Below, piece after piece: positions 41,007-46,660 of a stretch of 64,000 bases of DNA. How positions within the stretch are numbered: position 1 is the first letter of the stretch; the number at the start of each line of letters is the position of its first letter. The stretch lies in contig NC_058381.1 of NCBI RefSeq assembly GCF_018350175.1, forward strand, positions 2,294,001 to 2,358,000, in the 5' to 3' direction. The stretch comes from Felis catus. Its lineage: Eukaryota. Made by a program: the position numbers and the translations under genes. Under the pieces are notes generated by a model, which did not search any database, was not told the origin of the DNA, and saw nothing but the letters and a program-made list of their open reading frames with translations.

Positions 41007-41042
41007 ACATTGTGAGGGAGAGCCCCGGCATCATTGTGACCC
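41007..41042 (+). promoter_or_regulatory. SPEM1 upstream paired CATTGTGA element
   Basis: ACATTGTGAG at 41007 and TCATTGTGAC at 41031; the same pair precedes SPEM2 and SPEM3. Confidence 0.6.
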
Positions 41043-41146
41043 GCTTACCCCCAGGAGCTTCTGGGACGGGCGGGCGGGCGGGCGGGCAGACGCTGTGGGC
41101 ACAGTGGGCTGGGGGCCTAGGGGCCCCGGTGGCCCCAGGGACCCCC

Positions 41147-42372
41147 ATGGCCATGGCTGAGCGGCCACGGCCTGGGTGGGCCTCATATCCCAGCTCCAGC
41201 ACCAACAGCTGTCAGGACCTGGGCAACTCCATCCTGTTGCTGCTGGGTCTCATCATCTGCATTAACATTGGCATCAATATGGTGACGCTGGTCAGGGCGG
41301 TTCTGGCGGGAGGGGGACGGCAGGAGGGCTGGGGGAGGGCCTGGTGGCTGGGGCCTGCCTGGGGTCATTGTGTTCTCCATCGCCTAGCTCTGGCGCAGAC
41401 TCCGCGCCTTCTTACATCGGGTGTTCCATGTCGTTTATGAGAAAGGTAAGCGGAGGCTGCTGGGGGCATAGGAGAGGCAGGACCCAGGGGTCTCCAGGCC
41501 TGACCCAGAGCCGGCCCCTTCCCCTCCAGCTCTCCCCTCTCAGACCCCACGGCGGTGCCCCCTCTCCTCCCACCCCGCACCCTGCCCTCCCCATCCCTGG
41601 AGGAACCAGCCTCCCCCCCCCCCCCCAGCCTCTCGCCTCCCCTCGATCCACAGAAGCTTCTAAGCCATCCTCACCTGAGAAGCAGACCCAGCCTCTGAAA
41701 CAGAGCGCCCCTGCGGTCCACCTTCGATGCACCATGGACCCCGTGAAAATGACCGTGACCCCCCCACCCACTCGCCGCCATCGCCACAGGGGCTCCTCGA
41801 GGCGCCGGGGGCACCACCCGGTCGCCTGGGCCCCCGACACCGACGACGAGGAGAAGCCCCCACATCGGCACCCAGCAGTCTGCTCCCACAACTGGGATCA
41901 CTGCGCAGACTGGGAAACCTTCCGATCCACCCAGGGGCTCTGGGCTCCCCACACCATTCGCTTCCAGCAGACCGTAGAAGGAAAGCCCCTCAAAGGAGAG
42001 ATGCCGTCGGAGCTGGGCCTGGAGGCCTACGTGTACCCGGTGAACCCCCCACCCCCGAGCCCAAAGGCCCTGAGCCACGACAACTGTGGGGCGGGCGCGG
42101 GCGCAGGGGCCGGGGCCCAGGCCGAGCAGGAGCAGGGCGCCCCTGCCCCTCCGGCCCCGCCCCCTGCCCGGGGCCCCGCAATCGTCCCCGACCTCCCCGG
42201 GCGCCCCTCCTCGCGCCGCGTATTGTATGACGCCCGAGAAGTGAGGCGGCGCCTCCGGGAGCTGACCCGCGAGGTGGAGGCCCTGTCCCACTGCTACCCG
42301 CTGATCTCCAAGTCCAGCAATGCCGAAGGGACGGGCAAGGACTGGGTATACCGTTCCCTGGCAGAGAGGTGA
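41147..42372 (+). CDS. SPEM1: Spermatid maturation protein 1; 3 exons, 306 aa
   Basis: Exons 41147-41290, 41388-41445, 41654-42372, total 921 nt. MAMAERPRPGWASY...QDLGNSILLLLGLIICINIGINMVTL (hydrophobic helix), VHLRCTMDPV, C-terminus DWVYRSLAER*. Confidence 0.93.
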
Positions 42373-42382
42373 CCGGGAGACA

Positions 42383-42388
42383 AATAAA
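42383..42388 (+). terminator. SPEM1 poly(A) signal
   Basis: AATAAA 11 nt after the TGA. Confidence 0.75.
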
Positions 42389-42899
42389 AGGAAGAGAGGA
42401 GGTGGTTTGTGATGGTGTGGGGGGGAGGGGGGTGCCAGGGCCCCCACGGCACCCAAAAGCCCTGGTCGCTAAGACAACGCTCTCCCTGGCAACAGGGCCT
42501 AGAGAGCCCTAAGGACCCTCATCCACCTCTTGGCTGCCCTGGGCCCTGCCCGCAGCTCTTTCTTCCTTCCAACGTTCCCACCTGTAGCTCCCCTGTTTCC
42601 CTTTGTGCCCAGAGCAGGCCCCCCAAATCCCTCCCCGGATCCTCAGGCAGACCTGCACTAGAGGGGGACCCCAGCCCCATGGCCCTAGCCCTCGAGCAGC
42701 CTGGTTTCCGCCAGAGGTAGGCTGCAGCCACAGGGCGCGGTGTGGTTGCCTCTTAAGCTCTGGTTTCTTGGAGGGTGGCCGGCCGACCGAGAGATCCAGG
42801 CCTTCAGAATTTCCCGGTCGGGACCTGAGGTTCTCGTACCCCAGAGCAGGCTCAGAGCAGAGGATGAAATCCTGGGGACATTCTCTGTGACTTCGCTCC

Positions 42900-43020
42900 T
42901 CTGATTAGCACCTGCCTGTCACAATGAGGCGAGCGAGGCTCAGGGAGGATAAGGGACTTATTCGCGGTCACACAGACACCAGGGATCAACCTCACGGCCC
43001 CTGAGGCTCCGGGCACTGCT
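42900..43020 (-). mobile_element. Degenerate MIR fragment
   Basis: GAGGCTCAGGGAGG.TAAGGGACTT...GGTCACACAG resembles the MIR core. Confidence 0.5.
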
Positions 43021-44066: not shown

Positions 44067-44145
44067 TATAAAGAGCAAGCCGAGTGGATAAAGGAGCTGC
44101 CAGATGCTCATTGTGACTCCCCTGCCATGTGCCTCATTGTGACCC
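44067..44145 (+). promoter_or_regulatory. SPEM2 upstream TATAAA plus paired TCATTGTGAC element
   Basis: TATAAA at 44067-44072; TCATTGTGAC at 44108 and 44134. Confidence 0.6.
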
Positions 44146-44250
44146 AACAGCCTCACCAGCTGGTAGGTGTCCCCAGGTCCTGGCATGAGCACAGTGTGGG
44201 CGGGGCGGGGGGGGGCGCGGTGGCCCAGGTGGCCCTAGGACCCCCCCACC

Positions 44251-45981
44251 ATGGAAAACCAGCTCTATTATGACAGCCTGGGGTCCTGCAGTCCATACCA
44301 AGAAGCTCCCCAGGGTGCCAACGACTTACTGCTCCTGCTGCTGGGTCTTGTCATTCTTGTCAACATTGGGATCAACGTGGTAACTGCGGTCAGTGACGGC
44401 ACGGCCGTGGGCCACCCCGTCCCCCCCGGGGTGGAGAGGGCTGGGGGCGGGCGTGGTCTTCACTCCCACCCCACCGTACCCCAGATGTGGCATGGACTCC
44501 AGAATGCCTTAGACAAGATGATCCATTGGATTCATCTGAAAAGTGAGTATGGCAGCAAGAGAGGTAGGGGACACCCCTCCCCCCGATGCCACCGTCACCA
44601 CCCTAGAAACCCAGGCCACACTGTTCCCAACCCCGAGCTCTTCTGACATTCACCCTGTCCTCACGGACTCTCGTCGCCCCCAGATGAAATCCTCCAGGCT
44701 TCCGAAGGTTCCCCCAAAGATGCCCCGGCCAAGACCCAAGACGTTCACATCCACTGTGCCCTGGACCCTGTAGAAGTGAAGATGGCCCGGCCCACCTGCC
44801 ATCGCTCTTCCTCCTACCGCTGTCTCCGCAGCCCCCGCTGCAGCTGTCGCCGCCACCGCCGCTGCAGCCACCGCCGTGGCCGGCACCCCGGCCACCACCG
44901 CCCCTGCAGCCACCAGTGGGGACTGAGGAACCATAGGCATTTCCCCCCCAACCGCTCTGTCTTCCACAGTCACTGTCACAACCGCAAGATGTCACAGCTG
45001 CGGCCAGTGCCCTCCTTCGATGAGGACAACCTAGACTCCTGCCTAGAGGAGGATGACCTATCCTTCCCGCACCCCAAGTACCCACGGCGGGGCTGCGGAG
45101 GGCTCTACCAGCCGGTGGGCCTGCCCTCCAACTTGGGGCTGTGGGGCCGCCAGGGTGGGATCCTGGCCAGCCTGCCACCACCTTCTCTGTACCTGTCACC
45201 TGAGCTGCGCCGCATGCCCAAGCGCGTGGAGGCCAAGTCGGAGCTGAGGCTGCAGTCCTACGGGCCCCACTGCCCCCAGTCCCGAATCTGGGGCAATCTA
45301 GAGGCTGAGCAGCGGACCCCGTCTCCACCACCCGTCCGCCGGCCGCCCCCCGGCCCCTCCCGGGTCCCCGCGGGACACAGCCCTTACCCCTCAGGGGCCC
45401 AGCTACTCCATGACTCCCGGGATCAGCGGCGGCGGCGTCTGGAGGGCTCCGGACCACCCTGTGCCCTGGTGCCCCGGGGGTCCCGGCCCGAGGCCCGGGA
45501 GCCCTGCTCCCCCCAGGCCCACCGGCAGAGCCTCCCTGGCCACGCTCACAGCCAGTCCAACCGCAGCCCCCACCCATCCACGGGGCACTTGGGCTACGGC
45601 GCCCGGGACCCCCACGAGGTTCGGCGCCGGACGGGCGAATGCACCGAGGCAACGCCCGCCCGGCACCCTCTGACCACCGCATCCCTCACCGTGCTGGGCG
45701 AGACCTCCCACCAACGGGCCCCGGCTCCCGGCTCAGCCCTGCTGCCCCGCTCCTCCCAGCCCCTGCCCGAAGTCCAGGCTCCCGAGCCGCCCCCAGCTCA
45801 GCCCACCTTCAGGCCACTCAGCCGGACCCCGGGGGCCAATGGCAGCTACCAGGTATACGACAGCCTGGAGCTGAAGCGGCAGGTCCAGGAGAGCAGAGCG
45901 CGGGCCAGCTCCCTGCCGCCCCCCTGCACCTCGGCCTCCAGGCCCTCCCTGCACAGGAGCCGGAACGGGAAACTCCACTGA
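44251..45981 (+). CDS. SPEM2: SPEM family member 2 (C17orf74); 3 exons, 497 aa
   Basis: Exons 44251-44388, 44485-44542, 44684-45981, total 1494 nt. MENQLYY...[61 protein letters not shown], matching recalled human C17orf74. Confidence 0.92.
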
Positions 45982-46028
45982 CCGGCGGGGAACACGGGCG
46001 GTGGGGGGGCGGGGGGCGTGGAGAGAGG

Positions 46029-46034
46029 AATAAA
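46029..46034 (+). terminator. SPEM2 poly(A) signal
   Basis: AATAAA about 48 nt after the TGA. Confidence 0.75.
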
Positions 46035-46623
46035 GAGCAACCAAGTCCAGGAAGCGCTGTGATGTTCTGTGGCTTGGAATCGCCCCCTCCTCCTGCCAGC
46101 CCGGGGCCCTGCTCTTGGCTTCCTGACACGAGAAGCCAGTGTCCCCTTCTCGGCGGCGGCCACCCCCCCGTCCCCCCCCCCCCCCCCCCGTCCAGTGCCA
46201 TGCACTAAGGACATCTTGCAGCGGCAGACTCCAAACCACGGGTCCCTGAGCACCTACGCTGGGTCCCTGTCACCCTGATCCCAAAGTGGGCTCAGAGGCA
46301 CAGCCCCACGCGAGACCGTGAGGTCAGATTCCAGACCCGTGGGTTCCACGTGTGGGCAGAGCCGGGACCACGGCCCAGCAAAGGGCAGGAAGCATGCCAG
46401 GGCTCTGGGGTCCAGCCGGGCCTTCCCCAGGGCTCTGAGGCCAAGGTCTCCCCGGCCTCAGGAGCCGCCAAGGGGATGGAATGTGCGTGTTTGATGGAGT
46501 GAGGCAGCGGGCAGTGGGGGACCCAGCCAGGGCCGCGGGGCAGGCACGCCGGCTTCCAGGCCCCACCTGACCGTCCGGGCTCAGGTGACCTAGTTACCAG
46601 GGCACACTGTCCCCGGCCCTCCC

Positions 46624-46660
46624 TCATTGTGACCCCAGCCGCCCGGCCCCATTATGACCC
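46624..46660 (+). promoter_or_regulatory. SPEM3 upstream paired TCATTGTGAC / CCATTATGAC element
   Basis: TCATTGTGAC at 46624 and the variant CCATTATGAC at 46649. Confidence 0.55.

Follow-up and report, generated by a model that had tools for sequence, protein, structure and literature searches.

Among de novo promoter motifs reported from mouse, the element labelled 'Crem-t' by Jung et al. 2019 (eLife 8:e43966) is the one most strongly tied to post-meiotic programmes, and it is the strongest motif in several of the post-division components of that study. It resembles the ATF1/CREM site with an extra CAA tail; the authors could not assign it to a known factor and speculated that CREMτ or another ATF/CREB-type bZIP may bind it. 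In the motif entries of that study covered here, 'Crem-t (Atf1)' comprises C17P.I37 and related C15N runs, with the consensus GTGACGTCACAA[A/T]G, the consensus strings CCATTGTGACGTCAC and GTGACGTCACAATGG, and the information-coded form '_atTGTGA_gTca_'.

The SOX30 ChIP motif includes ACAAT (PMC8136829), and stage-matched round spermatids from Sox30-cKO contain fewer Spem1 and Spem2 (4933402P03Rik) transcripts than their wild-type counterparts (PMC6123400, Table S6). In Crem-KO testis, Spem1 shows a log2FC of -5.2 to -6.3, a fall that a 2023 CREM review attributes to arrest at the round-spermatid stage; Table 1 of the same review, with GSE29593 (Kosir et al. 2012) as its source, lists Spem1 as 'Bound by CREM: No' (PMC10454534). 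CREMτ is held to act on the promoters of TNP1 and PRM1. In these knock-outs, the fall in Spem transcripts may be an indirect effect. According to the literature, Spem1, Spem2 and Spem3 are expressed in spermatids, and mouse knock-outs of each of the three genes are male-infertile. The papers on these genes covered here contain no promoter analysis, and literature searches with the literal motif strings returned only primers and unrelated matches.

SPEM1, SPEM2 and SPEM3 are adjacent in the window analysed here (the whole stretch of 64 kb of cat DNA), and Pfam Spem1 matches on the first exons confirm all three. The 10-mer TCATTGTGAC has five exact matches in the window when both strands are counted, whereas 100 dinucleotide-preserving shuffles predict 0.03 and none of them attained five copies; the enrichment claimed in the initial annotation, with an expectation of about 0.1, is thus borne out. 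Four copies lie on the + strand (41031, 44108, 44134 and 46624) and one on the - strand (42918), while variants complete the pairs of SPEM1 (ACATTGTGAG at 41007) and SPEM3 (CCATTATGAC at 46649). Measured from start to start, the members of a pair are 24 bp (SPEM1), 26 bp (SPEM2) and 25 bp (SPEM3) apart, and the proximal copy ends 107 bp before the ATG of SPEM1 (41147), 108 bp before that of SPEM2 (44251) and 93 bp before that of SPEM3 (46751). All of these coordinates, spacings and distances reproduce those first annotated. An Rfam scan of 40500-47200 gave no match above chance.

The six sites were followed across nine placental mammals representing all four superorders (felid, fox, horse, bat, deer, mouse, hare, manatee and sloth). 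The word CATTRTGA fits 51 of the 54 sites (nine species, six sites each), and the remaining three are each one base off. The duplicated, conserved element that had been proposed for all three SPEM promoters is therefore present in other mammals, mouse included. In SPEM1, the distal motif (41007..41016, + strand), with its core CATTGTGA at 41008-41015, fits in 9/9 species; the mean pairwise identity of its 8-mer is 0.97, the third highest among 331 upstream 8-bp windows. The proximal motif (41031..41040, + strand) fits in 8/9 species, the hare carrying GATTGTGA, at an identity of 0.94. The SPEM2 distal motif (44108..44117, + strand) fits in 9/9 species as well as in a camelid RNA contig, and its 8-mer, with an identity of 0.97, takes the top rank among 334 upstream windows of 8 bp; at the proximal motif (44134..44143, + strand; identity 0.91) the fit extends to 8/9 species, the horse having AATTATGA, and the G/A position differs among species. 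Finally, the SPEM3 distal motif (46624..46633, + strand; identity 0.97) fits in 8/9 species, with CACTGTGA in the deer, and the proximal motif (46649..46658, + strand; identity 0.95) in 9/9, its R position being A in seven species and G in manatee and sloth. The core CATTGTGA has CATTATGA as a natural variant.

Other matches to CATTRTGA are almost absent from the 18-kb SPEM loci of the compared species. With cross-species identities of 0.91-0.97, the motif 8-mers are among the best-conserved upstream windows, compared with 0.40-0.50 in the upstream 100 bp, 0.64-0.70 in the linker and 0.75-0.87 over the initial 60 coding bp. The nine species have kept the orientation of the pair, a spacing of 21-26 bp and a location 93-150 bp ahead of the ATG (a distance counted to the ATG and not to the TSS), and all six copies lie on the sense strand in every one of them. 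The pair predates the triplication of the gene in the placental ancestor, the one ancestral SPEM promoter having carried it before that event. It has since been preserved in all three paralogues for ~100 million years by strong purifying selection.

The fifth exact copy (42918..42927, - strand), which had been counted as one of the set, lies outside the module, within an ancient MIR-like repeat at ~42883-43030. Orthologues of the surrounding stretch occur in eight further species, and the motif is found at this site in 0/7 of those aligned; the seven other mammals carry GTCACAAATGA, GTCACCAATGA or similar, and the felid match arose by a lineage-specific loss of 1 bp in GTCACAAATGA. Hence, this copy is a chance match and was rejected as a member of the module. 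The eight-species consensus of the stretch contains GAGGCTCAGAGAGG and GGTCACACAG, which may correspond to strings of the MIR core; a search of the same genome with the MIR-like stretch matched only the locus itself.

The initial annotation described the surroundings of the pairs as diverged beyond recognition. This is true farther upstream, where the DNA is unalignable across species, but not next to the coding sequence, where the paralogues have a second conserved block in common. In SPEM1 this block (41094..41146, + strand) abuts the ATG and starts with an initiator-like CACAGTG; cross-species identity over the 55 bp nearest the ATG is 0.82, and the block is probably the core promoter together with the 5'UTR. 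Its counterparts, identified in both paralogue and species alignments, lie 5' of the ATG at 44183..44250 (SPEM2, + strand) and 46703..46750 (SPEM3, + strand). The motif pair and this ATG-adjacent block are the sole upstream sequences common to SPEM1, SPEM2 and SPEM3.

Genome-wide, the strict pair pattern gave 23 matches, against 12 for a reversed control. The three SPEM matches are promoter-like, but the 20 others are AT-rich and without a downstream exon, and use of the strict pair as a module elsewhere was accordingly rejected. The single word does recur in spermatid promoters: those of cat TNP1 and PRM1 contain TCACAATG just 5' of their TATA boxes, in the orientation opposite to SPEM, as GGGTCACAATGG located 12 bp upstream of TTAAATA in TNP1 and as CCTCACAATGCC located 22 bp upstream of TATAAG in PRM1. 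The presence of the exact 8-mer in two of four control promoters corresponds to P ~5e-4; in the other two, PRM2 and TNP2, the 300 bp examined contain no copy.

How, then, does the SPEM element compare with the described sites? Read in reverse, its core is GTCACAATG, or GTCAYAATG with the variant, and it matches the informative right half of 'Crem-t'. The tail half of the published motif (gTCAcAa_g; in the complementary reading tTGTGAc) is present, GTCACAATG occurring in the four exact felid copies, but the left CRE-like half (TGAc, completing TGAcgTCA) is absent, the SPEM sites running GACCC, GACTC or GAGGG. Both elements are associated with post-meiotic genes, the SPEM one at presumptive promoters, and neither has an assigned factor; the SPEM element differs in lacking the left TGAC half, in being a fixed tandem pair and in tolerating G/A at one position. 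'Crem-t' was derived statistically, as a mouse consensus, and the study that reported it neither named the SPEM promoters nor noted the SOX-like tail. The view that the element was undescribed thus stands for the SPEM pair but not for the motif class, reported in 2019: the single motif is already known, and the SPEM pair is a fresh example of that kind.

The likeness to the SOX30 site, with its ACAAT core in haploid germ-cell promoters, lies in the ACAATG present at 38 of the 54 SPEM sites and in the dependence of Spem1 and Spem2 on SOX30 in round spermatids. In contrast, ATAATG (that is, CATTAT) stands at 16/54 sites, among them both mouse Spem2 sites, and the conserved GTCA/TGAC flank is foreign to a SOX site. 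The composite of SOX core and CRE half-site put forward at first agrees with the published motif, a CRE extended by CAA[A/T]G, although CATTAT at those 16 sites breaks ACAAT. With the canonical CRE (TGACGTCA) of CREMτ targets such as Tnp1 and Prm1, the SPEM sites have the GTCA half in common, as well as a presumed location ~50-60 bp upstream of the start in compact spermatid promoters; unlike it, they have neither the palindrome nor a CGTCA half-site, GTCA mostly following G (GGTCA), and Spem1 is listed as CREM-unbound. The SPEM TGAC cannot be called a canonical CRE half-site, as had been supposed, since the next base is C or T, not G; TGACG occurs among the aligned sites only at the deer SPEM2 proximal motif. 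Of the other motifs considered, those of DMRT, the GGGTCA nuclear-receptor half-site, C/EBP, PBX/MEIS, CTCF, T-box and the initiator (BBCABW) all fit poorly, and the copies that TNP1 and PRM1 carry in reverse, ahead of the TATA box, are a further argument against the initiator. SOX30 and/or CREMτ are plausible candidate binders.

On balance, we favour the interpretation that the CATTRTGA pair is a tandem promoter element acting at the DNA level in late (post-meiotic) spermatids, with SOX30 as its likeliest putative binder. With the start of transcription placed at the beginning of the second block, the pair would lie ~45-90 bp upstream of a TATA-less start and would recruit one or more spermatid activators, such that the three genes would be switched on together in round spermatids. 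SOX30 would sit on the ACAATG core, and the GTCA half-site may in addition take up CREMτ or a different bZIP protein; the identity of the binder is the weakest step of this proposal.

It is possible, if rather doubtful, that a spermatid factor other than SOX30 or CREMτ recognises TCAYAATG itself, and that the likeness to SOX and CRE sites is partial and coincidental. The sole tolerated change, G/A, falls where a SOX protein should need the base (16/54 sites), and this position is also of low information in some runs among the published motif entries covered here ('gTCAcAa_g'). Furthermore, CGTCA is missing from the SPEM sites, Spem1 is listed as CREM-unbound (PMC10454534), and Jung et al. 2019 could link their motif to no known factor. 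Such a factor would, however, have to accommodate the SOX30 dependence of Spem1 and Spem2 in stage-matched cells and the 38/54 sites with ACAATG, and it comes without any known candidate.

We consider it improbable that the sites are a CRE variant whose only binder is CREMτ or a related bZIP of the ATF/CREB type, along the lines speculated on by Jung et al. All that is left of the 8-bp palindrome is GTCA, preceded by G rather than CG. The published motif is indeed nearest to ATF1/CREM, TNP1 and PRM1 are held to be CREMτ targets, and Spem1 falls steeply in Crem-KO testis; yet this fall is explained by the round-spermatid arrest, and Spem1 is listed as unbound by CREM (PMC10454534).

Very unlikely, in our view, is a location of the motifs in the 5'UTR, where they would act as RNA (UCAUUGUGAC) and might, for instance, help to store spermatid mRNA or delay its translation, as is typical of such messages. 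The sense-strand position of all six copies in every species would suit such a role, but descent by duplication suffices to account for it. A TATA-like GATAAAAG lies ~20 bp upstream of the SPEM2 distal copy, the horse and deer gene models begin upstream of or within the pair, and a spliced camelid Logan RNA contig contains the pair, starting 503 nt ahead of the ATG and extending as far as the distal motif of SPEM3. Since it crosses intergenic DNA on both sides, this contig cannot mark a transcript end, although its intergenic run means that the motifs could lie inside some transcripts. Against a 5'UTR role, TNP1 and PRM1 hold the word reversed and 5' of the TATA box, the published motif entries covered here are all 'Left' runs, taken as sequence upstream of the TSS, and the A variant creates in most species an upstream ATG, a feature one would not expect in a 5'UTR. 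That the repeats are nonfunctional, as a neutral duplication relic, a product of gene conversion or chance, is scarcely credible and already contradicted by the cross-species site fits, alignments and identity figures, for although tandem paralogues are able to exchange sequence, conversion homogenises tracts and not 8-bp islands, sites 0.91-0.97 identical over ~100 million years stand between flanks at 0.40-0.70, and five copies were observed against 0.03 expected.

The promoter element favoured here gives the SPEM family a precise, testable feature of 8 bp, two copies per gene, kept across placental mammals, and links the SPEM promoters to the motif reported in 2019 as the strongest in post-meiotic mouse promoters. 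At ~150 bp, with both copies clean and a full CRE absent, such a promoter makes a handy bait for pull-downs or gel shifts, and could help to separate binding by SOX30, by CREMτ, by both together or by a new factor; it should also be usable as a compact spermatid-specific driver. A bolder proposal, which we hold only tentatively and think unlikely as it stands, is that the pair forms a dedicated cis-module, in place before placental mammals radiated, through which a putative spermatid factor reading TCAYAATG switches on the three SPEM genes together. If this were true, no natural substrate would be cleaner than the SPEM promoters for finding the 'Crem-t' factor.

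A 10-mer, TCATTGTGAC, occurs five times on the two strands of the 64-kb window, at 41031, 44108, 44134 and 46624 (+) and at 42918 (-); in 100 dinucleotide-preserving shuffles the expected count is 0.03, and a count of five was never reached. Together with the variant copies ACATTGTGAG (SPEM1 distal, 41007, +) and CCATTATGAC (SPEM3 proximal, 46649, +), the plus-strand copies form a distal and a proximal site upstream of SPEM1, SPEM2 and SPEM3, with start-to-start spacings of 24, 26 and 25 bp, respectively. From the end of the proximal copy to the start codon (41147, 44251 and 46751) the distance is 107, 108 and 93 bp, respectively. 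The initial annotation had reported this repetition, and its positions, spacings and ATG distances all agree with ours. The gene identities are confirmed by Pfam Spem1 (PF15670), which matches the first exons as well as the large exon of SPEM2. The closest relatives of the SPEM2 protein are felid (94-97% identity), which places the window in a cat-family genome. A one-mismatch copy, TCATTGTGAG, is located at 13276-13285 (-), approximately 28 kb upstream of SPEM1.

The corresponding NLGN2-SPEM1-SPEM2-SPEM3 loci were compared in mouse, red fox, Przewalski horse, Pteropus bat, red deer, European hare, Amazonian manatee and two-toed sloth, which, with the felid, represent all four placental superorders. 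Scanning both strands of each 18-20 kb locus for CATT[GA]T[GA]A returned almost no matches beyond a pair located 93-150 bp 5' of each SPEM start codon. The core CATTRTGA fits 51 of the 54 sites expected from nine species, three genes and two copies, the exceptions being one base off in each case: the hare has GATTGTGA as its SPEM1 proximal site, the horse AATTATGA as its SPEM2 proximal site and the deer CACTGTGA as its SPEM3 distal site. Position five is the sole variable position of the core (G in 38 sites, A in 16), the pair spacing ranges from 21 to 26 bp, and the orientation is always that of the sense strand. The SPEM2 pair is also intact in a tenth species, represented by a camelid RNA contig. 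The pair had been proposed to be conserved, and it is indeed kept in all three promoters across the nine species, mouse included. The sloth locus (L008) carries an isolated proximal-type motif at 13142, a complete pair at 14532/14555 (14532-14562) and no motif at the usual place ~2.4 kb past the SPEM2 start; its SPEM3 promoter region seems to have been displaced and in part duplicated. SPEM1 and SPEM3 are without annotation in this record.

In alignments of the orthologous promoters, the distal copy marks a sharp onset of conservation: mean pairwise identity is 0.40-0.50 over the 100 bp 5' of it, 0.97 in the distal 8-mer, 0.64-0.70 in the linker, 0.91-0.95 in the proximal 8-mer and 0.75-0.87 in the first 60 bp of coding sequence. 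By identity, the motif windows rank 1st to 25th among ~330 upstream 8-bp windows. This profile is the mark of purifying selection acting on two short stretches; neither a neutral duplication relic nor gene conversion would leave it.

The reverse copy at 42918, which had been counted with the set, does not belong to it. Orthologues of the surrounding stretch exist in each of the eight other species, and an alignment of seven of these (mouse, the weakest match, being left out) yields the consensus ...TGTCACAAATGAG.AGACTGAGGCTCAGAGAGG.CAAGTGACTT...GGTCACA..., which is probably the core sequence of the ancient MIR SINE. The aligned species carry GTCACAAATGA, GTCACCAATGA or GTCACAGATGA in place of the 10-mer, and the felid 10-mer exists only because one base was lost, making it a lineage-specific chance match. 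The MIR-like repeat itself (42883-43030, between SPEM1 and SPEM2) is orthologous in all nine species and hence predates the placental radiation.

The pair appears to be confined to the SPEM genes. A search of the genome (2.43 Gb) for CATTRTGAS-N12-17-CATTRTGAY found 23 matches, compared with 12 for the reversed control pattern. The SPEM promoters account for three of these; the remaining 20 sit in AT-rich sequence (GC 0.29-0.54 versus 0.58-0.70 at SPEM), and no ORF longer than 70 aa starts within 400 bp downstream of them, from which we conclude that the strict pair is specific to the SPEM family. The PF15670 profile, at its threshold, revealed no family members elsewhere in the genome.

Single motifs are found in other spermatid promoters. 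Pfam families served to locate felid TNP1, PRM1 and TNP2; PRM2 was identified as a basic ORF in the PRM1 region. TNP1 carries GGGTCACAATGG 12 bp upstream of a TTAAATA box (minus strand of its contig), and PRM1 carries CCTCACAATGCC 22 bp upstream of TATAAG (978-1038 of the PRM1 region, L034), with a one-mismatch CRE, TGAGGTCA, 13 bp further upstream; TCACAATG is common to both. No copy is present in the 300 bp upstream of PRM2 or TNP2. With an exact 8-mer background of two matches in 128 kb of strand elsewhere in the window (1.6e-5), its presence in two of four 300-bp control promoters has P ~5e-4. In TNP1 and PRM1 the motif is oriented oppositely to that of the SPEM genes relative to the gene, and lies upstream of TATA in untranscribed DNA, which argues against an RNA element or initiator. 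These copies argue for a DNA site that acts independently of orientation, ~50-60 bp upstream of the start site.

By analogy with these two promoters, we infer that transcription of the SPEM genes may start without a TATA box, some 45-60 bp past the proximal copy. A second block starts there (41094-41146 in SPEM1, 44183-44250 in SPEM2, 46703-46750 in SPEM3). Conserved between species and common to the three paralogues, this block opens with CACAGTG, GCAGTG or GAGTATG, approximates to GGGGGCC.GGGGCCC.GGTGGCCCTAGGGACCCCC..ATGG directly 5' of the ATG, and is probably the core promoter plus 5'UTR. It contains the short palindromes GGGGCCCC and CCCTAGGG. In SPEM2, the conserved ATG at 44186 would, if transcribed, begin an upstream ORF of 17 codons. 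A few features hint at the less likely alternative that the motifs are themselves transcribed. Every copy is on the sense strand, although this is a trivial consequence of descent by duplication. A TATA-like GATAAAAG (felid form GGATAAAGG, 44075-44085) precedes the SPEM2 distal motif by ~20 bp. In the SPEM2 alignment most boreoeutherians retain it, whereas hare, camelid and sloth do not, and SPEM1 and SPEM3 have none. Furthermore, the gene models of horse and deer begin either within the pair or 5' of it; these SPEM1 models (399 aa, L003 4327, and 346 aa, L005 4579, versus ~310 aa elsewhere) are probably over-extended predictions. The camelid contig (L032) is spliced across SPEM2, with 503 nt of continuous upstream DNA (1-503) and ~630 nt of downstream intergenic sequence (2031-2662) as far as the SPEM3 distal motif. 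Its source is either testis transcription reading through the cluster or DNA in the library, and it places no transcript end.

With regard to the factor, stage-matched single mouse round spermatids show higher Spem1 (average difference 1.52, FDR 4e-5) and Spem2/4933402P03Rik (2.15, FDR 1e-7) in wild-type than in Sox30-cKO cells (PMC6123400, Table S6). A simple SOX reading is countered by CATTAT in 16 of the 54 sites, including both sites of mouse Spem2, which is nonetheless SOX30-dependent. Spem1 also falls in Crem-KO testis (log2FC -5.2 to -6.3; PMC3285179). Its entry in Table 1 of the review PMC10454534 reads "Bound by CREM: No", and that review ascribes many such falls to arrest at the round-spermatid stage. 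Spem1 is covered by BRDT in spermatids (bioRxiv 10.1101/822874). Because of the CATTAT sites and the SOX30 dependence of mouse Spem2, we rank SOX30, perhaps together with a bZIP protein, as the leading candidate, followed by another reader of TCAYAATG and then by CREMτ alone. Of the composite element first proposed, what stands is a promoter module common to the three genes and under selection, its core SOX-like and its flank CRE-like; this flank is not a canonical CRE, and binding by CREM lacks support in the case of Spem1.

Nor is the motif class new. Jung et al. (2019; eLife 8:e43966, PMC6615865) performed de novo motif discovery on promoters grouped by single-cell expression components of mouse testis, and their supplementary consensus sequences include CCATTGTGACGTCAC, CATTGTGACGTCAC and GTGACGTCACAATGG for component C15N and GTGACGTCACAAAG for the named motif C17P.I37, with information-coded forms such as '_atTGTGA_gTca_' and '_tgA_gTCAcAa_g'. 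Among the supplementary rows available, those with this motif all derive from 'Left' runs, taken from the methods to be 150-250 bp upstream of the TSS. The SPEM core CATTGTGAC (reverse GTCACAATG) exactly equals the tail half of this 'Crem-t' motif, whereas the left CRE half is lacking at the SPEM sites, in which GAC is followed by CC or TC (the SPEM1 distal copy has G for the C of GAC). The TNP1 element is likewise tail-only, and not the full TGACGTCA. The ACAA[A/T]G tail is the SOX consensus, a likeness not pointed out by those authors, whose text does not contain 'Sox30'; SOX30 ChIP-seq motifs contain ACAAT (PMC8136829). The SOX core with CRE-type half-site therefore corresponds to a published motif to which no factor has been assigned. 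The novelty lies in its SPEM form, which has the tail alone, arranged as a fixed tandem pair, and is the main sequence still common to the three SPEM promoters. The SPEM pair would be useful as bait for the factor behind this late-spermatid motif.
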